From Zootoca vivipara (lineage: Eukaryota), in NCBI RefSeq assembly GCF_963506605.1, contig NC_083277.1:3906001-3970000 (forward strand): DNA of 64,000 nucleotides, given 5' to 3'. Below are positions 24,020 to 33,090 of this stretch, in pieces (the first letter of the stretch is position 1; every line of letters starts with the position of its first letter). A program made the translations under genes and the position numbers. The notes beneath the pieces are model-generated. The model did no database searches and was not told where the DNA came from. It saw nothing but the letters and a program-made list of their open reading frames with translations.

Positions 24020-27000
24020 ATGGCCTCAGGTTCACAGCCGGGATTGTCTCTTCCTTGGGGTGAAGTTGAAAGAGCTTCCCAGCAGCCACCTCAGGTAAGG
24101 GAGGAAGAATCCAAGAGAGTGATGGGAGTTTCCTGGGTGCCTCTCTCTGTGTGGAGAGGCAAGGGAGACTGAAAAAATATCCCTCTTTTATTCTTTCCCT
24201 TTTTTTATATATACTTCTGGCCCAGCAAAAGTGGCTGTGATGGGGACTGATAGATAAATGAAAGCACATATGCAGCTATCATGTCTCCTTACATGCTTGG
24301 GCAATGGTGGAATGAATTCTACTCCTTTGTCCAGGGCCTGGTGACCTTTGAGGACGTAACTGTGTTCTTCGAGGCAGAGGAATGGGCCCTACTGGATCCG
24401 GGCCAAAAAGCTTTGCATAGGGAAGTCATGGAAGAGAATTACGAGACTGTGGCCTCTCTAGGTAAGCCCTGCTTCTTTTTTCATTCGATAATAGATGTCT
24501 AAGGAATTAATTTAGTAGCCCCCCTCCATATGTCCTTGCAATTGAGCCCTTTTCTGATGTTATTGAGCAGTTAAACGCAATTGCACTTTCTATTCCATTT
24601 GCTGCTTCAAAGGTTTGAGCTCGTATACTGCTCCAGATTTAGCGGGTGCATGTCCCATTTTTGTTTAGTCGTCTTAGTCATGTTTGACTCTCCGTGACCC
24701 CATGAACCAGAGCATGACTTGGAAACTCTCACTTTCTTCTCAGAGTTTTCTTGGCAAAATACTAGAGTGGTTTGCCAGTTCCTTCTCCAGGCGGATCACA
24801 TTTAGTCTAAACTCTCGGCTATGACCTGTCCGTCTTGGGTGGCCCTGCACGGCATAGCTCATAGCTTCTTGGAGTTATTCAAGCCACTTTGCCACAACAA
24901 GGCAGTGATCCGTGAAGGGAGCATGCTAAAATCCTGCAACTTTTCGTTCTGCAAATGTTCTGGGCTTTTTGCTTACTCTCACTTTTGTTGTGCTATAGGT
25001 GCAAAAGCATCTAAGCAAATGGACCCACTTCATTAACTAGCAGGAAGTTCGAGCTTTTAGGCCACACCGGCAGACTTCTGTGGATGCCACATGACAAATT
25101 TCTTCATTTTCCACAGCGAGCGGAATCCAACATCCCTGTGGTTTTTGTCCTGTGAATCAGCAAGCATAGCATGATCTCATACCAAAATAAAAAAAAAATT
25201 AGTTGGTCTTTAAGGTGCTGCTGGAAGGATTTTTTAAATTTTGTTTTCACAACAACTTAAATACAGTATTCAGCAACTGTTTTAGCTGTTTTTAATTTGT
25301 GTGGGTTTCGTTTGTTTTCATTGAGGGAGGGGAGGTGTGGCTGGGATAATAATAAGATTTTTTTATTTGTACCCCGCCCATAATAATAATAATAATAATA
25401 ATAATAATAATAATAATAATAATAATTTATTATTTATACCCCGCCCACTCTGGGCGGCTTCCAACAAAACATTAAAATACAGAAATCAAACATTAAAAGC
25501 TTCCCTAAACAGGGCTGCCTTGAGATGCCGTCCAAAGGTCTGGTAATTGTTCTCTTTGACCTCGGTGCCACTGCCAAGAAGGCCCTCTGCCTGGTTCCCT
25601 GTAACTTGGCTTCTCGTAGCGAGGGAACCGCCAGAAGGCCCTCGGCACTGGACCTCAGTGTCTGGGCAGAACGGTGGGGGTGGAGACGCTCCTTCAGGTA
25701 TACTGGGTATACATCTGACCGGGTTGCTCCAGCCACTCTGGACAGCTTCCAGCATATACAGAAACATAATAAAACATTGAACATTAAAAACTTCCCAATA
25801 CAGGGCGGCCTTCAAATGTTTTCTAAAAGTTGTATACTGTAGTTCTTTATCTCAACATCTGATGGGAGGGCGTTCCACACTGCAGGTGTGACTACCGAAA
25901 AGGCCCTTTGCCTGGTTCCCTGTAACCTCACTTCTCGCAGTAAGGGAACCGCCAGAAGGCCCTCAGTGCTCCATCTCAGTGTCTGGGCTGAATGATGGGG
26001 GTGGAGATGCTCCTTCAGGGATACATGGGCGCAAAGGAATAATGAGCACACTCCTGTTCGTTCCTTTGCAAGCCCAGCTTATGTTCACTGTATTTTTAAA
26101 ATGTGGAAACGGCTAAAACAGCTGTGGAGCTTCTCCAACTCTCCCTAGGAAATGGAAGCGTTTTGCACCTCAGCACGTTTCCGCAAAGACATCCTTTTTT
26201 TAACCTGGGGAGAACAGTGGTTTAGGGTGGGGGAAGGATGATGTGGGAGGCAGGGCAAGCTGGGTAAGGGGCACGTGGCACAGACAGTGACTGTATGGTG
26301 TGCCAGCAAAACATTGGGTCTTTCAGTTGTCCTGCCAGCCAGCCTTCAGGTCTGTGGCTGATGTTGCTGAATACCAGGTCAGTTCTGAATATGACCTCCT
26401 TCATTCCTGATCTGATTGTGGATTAGGAGGCTGATCTGGTCTACATCACAGAGACCTGGGTGGGTGAGCAGGATGGACTTGGCCTCATCCAACGGTCCCC
26501 ACTTGTTGCAGCATCCGGGCAGACATGAGGGTTGGGCAGGGGTAGTTTCTATGGCTCATCTCACTCTCCAGAATCTCTGTCCGGTTGGCTGGCTTTGGAA
26601 TAGCTGGATATTTTGTGGCGAGTAAGTAGAATCGGACATAATTGGTCCCCTGTGTTTCCTTCAAAGTCTCAGACCTCAATTCCTGTTGGGAAGAAGGAGA
26701 AGATCCACTTCTCCGGCGCCCTAGAGAAGAGGAGGTATCAATAGGTGAGTGCTTAGCTGTCTTGTGGGGCTCCTTTTGGTCTGGGTATTGAAATATTTTT
26801 GTTCAGTGACTTTGAAAGAGGCTTAAGTAAATTCAGGGAATGTAGAGCTGCCCATGGCTTTTAGCCAAGATGGCTATATATCAAATATCTCTGAAACTGG
26901 GAAGAGCAGGAGGAGAGGGCTCTTAACTCTATGTCCTAGTGGGATCCCCATAAGAATCAAGTTGGCTTATGTGGGGATGCGGAACAAGACAAGCCTTATA

Positions 27001-33000: not shown

Positions 33001-33090
33001 ATTTTCAATGCTGCAAATGCAGTTAATTTGTGGTGGAACGATGTTGCCAGGGGGCGCATTAGAAGACCCCACTTTAAAAACAAAGACTAG
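24020..33090 (+). CDS. G3 KRAB-hAT transposase fusion (KRAB-A/B + TTF zinc finger + hAT core + hATC dimerisation domain; ZNF862-like architecture), ~784 aa; exons 24020-24094, 24335-24461, 26667-26744, 28837-29066, 31246-33090
   Basis: All introns GT-AG with matching phases (0,1,1,0); total 2355 nt. TTF finger WL...CLVC...|[10 protein letters not shown] is split by the intron. hAT motifs DGSTD, HCVAH, RW, CERG. Confidence 0.75.
24335..24461 (+). CDS. G3 KRAB-A exon
   Basis: 127 bp; [42 protein letters not shown]|G. Confidence 0.92.
27280..27788 (+). CDS. G3 ancestral ZNF exon: spacer with four IVKxE repeats, followed by decayed zinc fingers (27710-27920); alternative terminal or internal exon
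   Basis: Acceptor ccatcag|AT GAT (phase 1, the same D-D start as the G2 and G4 ZNF exons). Downstream [17 protein letters not shown] remnants are out of frame. Confidence 0.7.
28559..28830. mobile_element. DNA-transposon-like terminal fragment (gatttaaatc repeats)
   Basis: Starts CAGGG with repeated palindromic (g)atttaaatc subterminal motifs; no partner end seen. Confidence 0.45.
29492..30569 (-). mobile_element. 5'-truncated BovB/RTE LINE with RT C-terminus, inside the G3 transposase intron
   Basis: ORF 29503-30504 with [10 protein letters not shown] and YADD; 12-bp TSD atttggtgtttt; (CAA)n tail. Confidence 0.95.
30650..31212 (+). mobile_element. CR1 LINE 3' fragment
   Basis: [12 protein letters not shown]-like coding remnant and ttctgtgattctat tail. 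Other CR1 pieces at 11020-11310, 14510-14792, 36660-37010, 37165-37930 and 44460-45035. Confidence 0.85.
31246..33090 (+). CDS. hAT transposase-derived terminal exon of G3
   Basis: Open 614-aa frame after a strong acceptor ttttgtttccttttcag; RNase H-like DDE region and C-terminal [12 protein letters not shown] dimerisation motif. Confidence 0.92.
   Translation: MKKHGASATHQKACRAQLARLNPVSTPVSVPTVQELRTMDSNLHSNLEKLFNTAYFIVKENYSFDDFPALCALQKKNGLIVGETYRNDKAAKQFAHYIAESLRLELKYKLSKANFFGILADGSTDRSNAAASEIVYFYYINEAEVKCSYGALRECPSENAAEVKSTIESVLDEYIPDWKSKLTAISFNGASVDTGNASGVAKLFQDSCPGLVAVHCVAHQLELAIGDALKCVKFAGLAEDVVKGIYTFYHSSPKRAKELKEIGEVLNEKVLRHMGITGIRWLQSKNSAVKALANNLPVVVVHLQQIVSSSSTKPDRKVEAKLKGYLKRLKSERFVKFLFFMDDVTHTLTRLSEVFRRKCVSVSDVKTSLTATKERLQRMVKDSGPQLQKFESAAQLEGSVLVYKDVEIVSNASEVGCFEEDRRVLLSSIVEAIDKWFDRIGNDRVLRNVEIFDPCNIPRPERDTSASGHGEKELSELMQALPSNVRVDKEAILEEYQEFKVWAINKTSITCEEAWQRLQAESTASASYINICKVLNFLRVLPLSTAECERGVSQLNLVKTDSRKRLLATTIDDLLMIKMNGPDLEIFNAANAVNLWWNDVARGRIRRPHFKNKD

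Follow-up and report, generated by a model that had tools for sequence, protein, structure and literature searches.

We analyzed a stretch of 64,000 nucleotides from the genome of Zootoca vivipara (contig NC_083277.1 of assembly GCF_963506605.1, positions 3,906,001 to 3,970,000 of the forward strand), which is referred to here as the window and is numbered from its first letter. It represents a vertebrate KRAB zinc-finger gene cluster, containing intact C2H2 finger arrays at 5-1252 (minus strand), 18874-19440 and 40815-41553 (both plus strand) and KRAB boxes at about 14173, 24335, 39361 and 46188. One gene of this cluster, G3, spans positions 24020-33090 on the plus strand and combines a KRAB box with a transposase of the hAT type. 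Reading the sequence and searching it by tblastn with orthologous proteins gave the same six exons (Table 1), whose lengths add up to 2715 nucleotides or 905 codons in a single frame, a figure obtained by coordinate arithmetic from exons that were searched singly and not as a joined spliced sequence. The host-derived KRAB and the transposase domains lie on separate exons with phases that, as read from the sequence, allow in-frame joining. The second KRAB exon was proposed as KRAB-B in an earlier note made from the sequence alone. It stands as an exon that is preceded by AG, followed by a GTGAGT donor and ends in phase 1; a Pfam scan of this exon gave no match, and the label KRAB-B applies by position only. 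The orthologous gene models contain an additional cassette exon of 27 codons, whose skipping leaves the frame of G3 intact; it yielded no significant alignment in the window, and the read depth over 26800-26999 was zero in all four runs. Within the spacer exon, the copy number of the tandem repeat varies across lacertid species, leading to indels of 25-27 residues between the orthologues.

Table 1. Features of G3 and its introns in the window (^ marks a splice junction)
Feature	Position	Strand	Details
Exon 1	24020-24094	+	Starts with ATG, 25 codons; donor CAG^GTAAGG, phase 0; tblastn match to residues 1-25 of P0001/P0002; 76-96% identity to orthologues
KRAB-A exon	24335-24461	+	Ends in phase 1; Pfam KRAB 75.5 bits, E 2.4e-21, profile positions 1-42 of 42
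'KRAB-B' exon	26667-26744	+	AG acceptor; phase 1 to phase 1; donor TAG^GTGAGT; matches orthologue residues 69-93
Possible cassette-exon remnant (uncertain)	26807-26826	+	Seen by eye; good acceptor upstream; in-frame TAA at 26824-26826
ORF resembling a transposable element	26967-27254	-	Spans the intronic repeat 27061-27195
Repeat copy in intron	27061-27195		95% identical to 58199-58333; very high read depth
Spacer exon (5' part of former finger exon)	27280-27713	+	Phase-1 acceptor; donor CCA^GTATGT at 27713, phase 0; tblastn match to P0002 residues 120-263
Coding tandem repeat	27351-27611	+	Acidic motif with I-V-K-x-E; periods 75 and 87 nt; within spacer exon
Alternative donor	27684-27685	+	GG^GTCAGA, phase 1; X1 contig joint 27683/4 to 28907/8
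Relic of about 2.4 C2H2 fingers, now intronic	27710-27911	+	blastn, three-frame reading, Pfam fragment
Intron stretch between relic and TTF exon	27912-28907	+	No other copy in the window
TTF-finger exon	28908-29066	+	Cys half of transposase zinc finger; acceptor TCTCAG^AGG, phase 0; donor ACG^GTGAGT; Pfam zf-C17orf113
Repeat-filled intron	29067-31245 (2179 nt)	+	Splits transposase zinc finger; joint 29066 to 31246 in X1 and X5
Short repeat	29126-29159		Inside intron 29067-31245
BovB-type reverse transcriptase ORF	29503-30504	antisense	Inside intron 29067-31245
Repeat with about 10 copies in the window	30644-31213		Inside intron 29067-31245
hAT exon	31246-33090	+	His half of TTF finger and entire transposase core; 614 codons and stop
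Asn codon at second catalytic Asp position	31807-31809	+	Hermes D248 equivalent by profile alignment

The spacer exon is connected to the transposase by an in-frame capture junction between donor 27713 and acceptor 28908, both in phase 0. This joint is present in an RNA contig of run X5, and another X5 contig carries the joint between the TTF and the hAT exon; all of these introns have GT..AG ends. Run X1, which belongs to a different study, contributed a contig of 3072 nucleotides (depth 10.4) covering 27381-27683/4, 28907/8-29066 and the sequence from 31246 onward. The contigs of two studies thus run from the spacer through the TTF into the hAT exon, and the transcripts do not end before 28.8 kb, which the earlier note had named as grounds for giving up the fusion. 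Because the depth was zero over 27800-28399 in both runs, X1 and X5 are derived from RNA in which the finger relic was spliced out. In stranded raw RNA-seq data, a few reads fell on the TTF and hAT exons, nearly all of them in one direction.

These data changed several details of the gene structure proposed before. The phase-1 acceptor at 27280, thought to open the old last exon, was borne out by reading the sequence, and the arithmetic behind a "KRAB-only" reading frame of 262 amino acids was correct. However, the transposase open reading frame (ORF) does not run uninterrupted from 28837, being divided over two exons by an intron of 2179 nucleotides, and the RNA contigs as well as the models of three other species use acceptor 28908 in phase 0 instead of the suggested phase-1 acceptors 28837 or 28846. 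None of the listed joints uses either of these acceptors or the suggested donor at about 27591, although five further joints lay outside the listing and may include minor use of them, and a product of about 784 amino acids from direct splicing of the KRAB-B exon to 28837 received no support. Phase-1 cryptic donors had been expected to include the spacer in frame, but the productive donor is 27713 in phase 0, which was absent from the list given. The cryptic donor 27684 on that list is indeed used in the X1 contig, but it gives no in-frame product: joined to 28908, the frame is shifted, and translation in this frame meets a TGA at 28976-28978. Because this stop sits 88 nucleotides upstream of the next junction, the transcript is a textbook substrate of nonsense-mediated decay. 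The out-of-frame donor lies 29 nucleotides upstream of the productive one, and by a simple count both match the consensus MAG^GTRAGT at six of nine positions, compared with seven to eight of nine for the inherited donors of G3. The weaker match fits donors that have arisen within a former exon.

Orthologous NCBI models are available for Lacerta agilis, Podarcis raffonei and P. muralis, coding for proteins of 906-931 amino acids that are named "zinc finger protein 862-like" and contain the Pfam domains KRAB and zf-C17orf113. The capture junction ...NPN(I/L)QPTP^RKKVRPSTF... is common to all three, as is the joint from the KRAB-B exon to 27280; in Z. vivipara, an X5 contig begins at 27278, as it would if the preceding exon ended in AG. 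The hAT exon is 95.5-96.1% identical to the proteins P0001-P0003, the TTF exon 96-100% and the "KRAB-B" exon 80-88% identical to the three orthologues, and the spacer shows about 85% identity at aligned positions between the window and the three species, plus the indels of repeat units. The KRAB-A box is identical to each orthologue in 41 of 42 residues. According to our own arithmetic, the probability of at most one change in these 42 residues is about 0.01 if they had changed at the rate of the spacer. Because the KRAB-A box was kept next to decayed fingers, we argue that it is still in use, and its near-unchanged state suggests that it may work together with another DNA-binding part.

A paralogue of the G3 transposase with 69% identity is found at the NOC2L locus of L. 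agilis and P. raffonei (P0004/P0005). Its second catalytic Asp is intact, and it evolves at about double the rate of G3, differing by 9% between Lacerta and Podarcis (91% identity) compared with 4% for G3; its branches in the tree described below are longer than those of G3. Set beside the spacer and this paralogue, the higher identity and shorter branches of the G3 transposase may hint at purifying selection on that part. One of the models at this locus splices the N-terminal exons of NOC2L into an acceptor homologous to that at 31246 of the window. Since the paralogue shares this acceptor, intron 29067-31245 and its acceptor are older than both copies, and both probably came from the transposon itself.

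The central proposal of the earlier note, namely that splicing gave a KRAB zinc-finger protein (KZFP) a transposase in place of its C2H2 array and that the relic of this array is still present at the locus, is upheld by the RNA contigs together with the three orthologous in-frame models. We consider it very probable that G3 is a host-transposase fusion gene restricted to lacertids, in which the fingers of a KZFP were exchanged for a hAT transposase by splicing. Several observations weigh against this assignment. In X1, the most abundant contig, with a depth of 10.4, is spliced from the out-of-frame donor 27684, and the in-frame joint from 27713 to 28908 was found in one contig of low depth (X5, 4.95). 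No read or contig links any KRAB exon to the spacer exon in the Z. vivipara runs examined, two raw RNA-seq runs reach a depth of about 2.6 at most, and a few reads at 28400-28800, on the 5' side of the acceptor, could reflect a KRAB-free start. Finally, the Pfam profile Dimer_Tnp_hAT scores 19.7 bits on the G3 transposase, below its cut-off of 21.4; the same profile gives 36.6 bits on the 49%-identical relative P0007, and a profile of the G3 family matches the C-terminus of Hermes transposase (E 1.4e-4).

Some of these points would also be expected if the locus produced a read-through chimera, with the KRAB gene being a dying pseudogene, the hAT-derived gene being independent, with translation from an ATG that belongs to it (at 28830 or a Met further downstream), and the fusions being mostly unproductive by-products. 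The main X1 contig being out of frame and the reads at 28400-28800 agree with this scenario, as does the existence of a stand-alone model (P0005) for the paralogue. Moreover, the in-frame ATG at 28830 looks like an ancestral start and may indeed be that of the transposase, judging from an alignment with the N-termini of P0011-P0013. We nevertheless regard a read-through chimera as unlikely: the KRAB-A box was preserved across genera while the adjoining fingers decayed, the identical in-frame junction occurs in the models of three species and in X5, no reads cover 27800-28399, and among the contigs none starts 5' of 28908 and continues into the TTF exon.

The remains of the original DNA-binding part lie directly 3' of the new donor 27713, which marks the boundary between the spacer and the first finger. 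The degenerate and frameshifted fingers noted earlier downstream of 27280 are confirmed by a relic at 27710-27911 that contains no intact finger: it shows 72-78% DNA identity (blastn) to the arrays at 40815-41553 and 18874-19440, is spread over all three frames and is interrupted by a stop at 27786-27788. One fragment still matches Pfam zf-H2C2_2 with an E value of 4e-9. Searching for the pattern C-x2-C-x12-H-x3-5-H gave no complete finger between 19440 and 40815, whereas the neighboring genes carry 7-15 fingers. These results show a genuine relic that is short and breaks off abruptly. Of the typical parts of a KZFP, G3 retains the KRAB-A box but no intact tandem C2H2 array in its last exon. 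No finger-like remnants were found between the relic and the transposase or beyond the transposase up to 39000, and since the relic ends so abruptly, the array may have been cut by the insertion or a deletion instead of decaying after the capture of a downstream transposase, as the earlier note had it.

This raises the question of the order of events. In the same fusion, the transposon may have inserted into the array of fingers, or its arrival may have been accompanied by a deletion, so that most fingers were lost at once and the swap was forced rather than following a gradual loss. The relic breaks off at about 27911 after some 2.4 fingers, and it is still similar enough to the paralogous arrays that further fingers would remain detectable up to 39000, where none are seen. 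However, the insertion point is marked by neither terminal inverted repeats nor a target-site duplication, the relic and the putative ATG of the transposase lie about 920 nucleotides apart, with unassigned DNA between them, and the parent gene may simply have carried three fingers. We therefore consider a forced swap a serious possibility, but give it somewhat less than an even chance. The earlier note had suggested looking for a relative with intact fingers that lacks the transposase; none was found, and a search for KZFPs sharing the "KRAB-B" and spacer regions but bearing intact fingers returned only the three fusion orthologues, the search having covered proteins of 512-1629 amino acids. 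Apart from a BovB fragment, no other copies of 27905-28907 or of the 3' flank were found in the window. An AT-rich stretch at 28583-28619 contains the sequence GATTTAAATC twice, at 28583 and 28610 (27 nucleotides apart; two occurrences versus 0.1 expected). This pair lies 5' of the ATG at 28830 and may have remained from a subterminal repeat at the former 5' end of the hAT element.

The transposase encoded by the hAT exon was modeled by AlphaFold with a predicted local distance difference test (pLDDT) score of 88.6 and a predicted template modeling (pTM) score of 0.84. A Foldseek comparison with the PDB returned Hermes transposase for all of the top 11 matches, with E values from 3e-10 to 4e-8 and target-normalized template modeling scores of 0.58-0.69, and the model thus shows a Hermes-like fold, a type defined by an RNase-H-like core with a large helical insertion and a C-terminal domain. 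The residues at the positions of the catalytic triad are D121, N188 and E549. The first Asp and the Glu are invariant in the family alignment, whereas the column of the second Asp contains Asn in all four lacertid orthologues; of 56 family members, 50 have Asp there, and the 69%-identical paralogue is one of them. A profile alignment places N188 on D248 of Hermes, in an alignment stretch that is weak when taken alone, and the same offset places E549 on E572 of Hermes. In the model, N188 follows immediately after the strand 182-187, which is the canonical position.

The earlier description of the transposase as "live" is thus correct for its intact ORF but does not hold for its catalytic site. 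An exhaustive pair search of 27880-28900 versus 33095-36500 revealed no terminal inverted repeats with an 8-bp target duplication, and the inverted repeats that were detected around the transposase are copies of BovB and other repeats. With the second catalytic Asp and the terminal repeats lost, the intact ORF most likely encodes a dead enzyme, and the element has most likely ceased to move. A hAT transposon that is still mobile and lies behind a dead KZFP gene by chance would share the long intact ORF, the conserved first Asp and Glu and the Hermes-like fold. Yet we give this explanation almost no credence, because the change from Asp to Asn is shared by four species, terminal repeats and target-site duplications were not found, and the window contains no second copy. 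In addition, 1.84 billion representatives yielded only three clusters with at least 50% identity to the hAT exon, and the intron is filled with later repeats.

The name given to the orthologous models suggests another origin, namely that G3 is the lizard orthologue of mammalian ZNF862 and hence an old fusion rather than a lacertid one. Both share the general layout of KRAB, TTF finger and hAT transposase. In a tree of 56 relatives, however, the lacertid clade is sister to the paralogue from the NOC2L locus, followed by unfused proteins of about 600 amino acids (47-51% identity), and the grouping with these relatives and the paralogue received full support in the Shimodaira-Hasegawa-like approximate likelihood ratio test (SH-aLRT 100). 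Bat ZNF862 (P0143) belongs to another well-supported clade, together with a protein from Hemicordylus. Forcing the lacertid and bat ZNF862 groups together resulted in a log-likelihood difference of 212 and was rejected by the approximately unbiased (AU) test with p = 4e-34; the group tested was named after the tree had been seen, the hypothesis itself having come from the NCBI name. Furthermore, G3 is only 27% identical to bat ZNF862, one zf-C17orf113 stretch is present in P0001/P0002 versus two in P0143, and Table S3 of Cosby et al. (bioRxiv 10.1101/2020.05.07.082677) lists ZNF862 (KRAB and hAT) for "Mammalia, 180-312 My". Orthology to ZNF862 is therefore extremely improbable, and the automatic name "ZNF862-like" is, by these sequence comparisons, misleading for G3.

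The Hemicordylus protein in the ZNF862 clade (XP_053157962, P0102, from H. capensis, "ZNF862-like") is sister to bat ZNF862 (SH-aLRT 100). Like G3, it is a lizard protein with KRAB and a TTF-hAT transposase that has lost catalytic residues (Gly at the second Asp, Lys at the Glu), but it belongs to the ZNF862 lineage, is 30% identical to G3 and carries two intact C2H2 fingers between KRAB and the transposase. From its placement, the ZNF862 lineage may predate mammals and may once have carried fingers. A second protein of this species, XP_053158033 (P0085), is a fusion of SCAN, TTF and hAT from the same broad hAT clade, which is another sign that squamates have repeatedly captured this TTF-hAT transposase type.

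In the surroundings of G3, two fragments of BovB-type long interspersed nuclear elements at 29493-30600 (minus strand) and 33807-34244 (plus strand) bracket the hAT exon as inverted copies with 93-96% complementarity, and the X1 contig appears to terminate at the start of the second one. The same cluster contains another KRAB gene at 45475-56010, with KRAB-A at about 46188 and a KRAB-B-like sequence at 49472, which the earlier note had labeled as a KRAB-BED-hAT fusion. Any relation of its transposase to that of G3 was undetectable by tblastn.

Taken together, we propose that a hAT transposon of the TTF-finger/DUF4371 type entered a KZFP gene within the part of the last exon that codes for the fingers, or immediately behind that part. 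A weak donor arose at the boundary between spacer and first finger, from which splicing proceeds to 28908, 26 codons inside the transposase frame, while the second intron divides the transposase zinc finger. The predicted product of about 905 amino acids would consist of KRAB-A, "KRAB-B", an acidic repeat spacer, a single TTF zinc finger and a complete hAT core. The KRAB part would recruit a corepressor, and the transposase finger and core would supply DNA binding and dimerization. Such a protein would act as a sequence-specific repressor, whose targets may be relics of the transposon family from which it came. Use of the competing donor 27684, as seen in a contig, would yield an unproductive isoform with a premature stop. 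A more far-reaching version, in which the locus is a rare case of an in-place replacement of a DNA-binding module "caught in the act", the donor pair perhaps acts as a regulated on/off switch and the protein perhaps silences its own hAT relics in lacertid genomes, appears rather doubtful to us; it builds on the placement of the donor precisely where the spacer meets the first finger, on the finger remains right behind it and on the perfect conservation of the captured transposase finger.

The capture of transposases by KRAB genes via splicing has been described by Cosby et al. (bioRxiv 10.1101/2020.05.07.082677), who list about 94 events. The closest parallel is KRABINER (ZNF112-Mlmar1) of vespertilionid bats, in which a KZFP likewise captured a DNA transposase by splicing, KRAB was joined to the DNA-binding and core domains of the transposase, and the event is confined to one animal family. 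It differs from G3 in that a mariner element lies in the last intron, with the acceptor just 5' of the transposase ORF, and that the parental ZNF112 isoform with its fingers survives. In G3, the element is of the hAT type, the acceptor lies inside the transposase ORF, the fingers are dead, and the donor lies within the former finger exon. Mammalian ZNF862 resembles G3 by its KRAB N-terminus, its TTF finger of the zf-C17orf113 type and a hAT core of the same broad clade, but represents a separate hAT lineage with two TTF stretches and a length of about 1140-1170 amino acids. Among the entries of Table S3 of the same study, KHATD2 (KRAB, ZnF_TTF and Dimer_Tnp_hAT; "Anolis only") from Anolis carolinensis is, like G3, a squamate combination of KRAB with a TTF-type hAT transposase and is listed as "fusion only". 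It differs from G3 in being listed as Anolis-specific; in two word searches, no Anolis protein was found among the G3 relatives. The related entry KHATD1 is listed for turtles, and the sole entry from Lacertidae is a SCAN-Tigger fusion. G3 is absent from this catalogue. The underlying screen relied on Pfam transposase domains, and G3 is likely missing because its hAT domain scores below the Pfam threshold. A literature search retrieved no paper on G3.

It is well established that new transcription factors can arise when KRAB genes capture transposases, and G3 opens no new principle, its fusion being already annotated automatically in related lizards. It adds an independent capture event that, within the reach of the present data, is confined to lacertid lizards. 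With the remains of the replaced array still lying beside the new donor, it provides a concrete intermediate for the stage at which the parental isoform is lost, a stage that the catalogue infers statistically.

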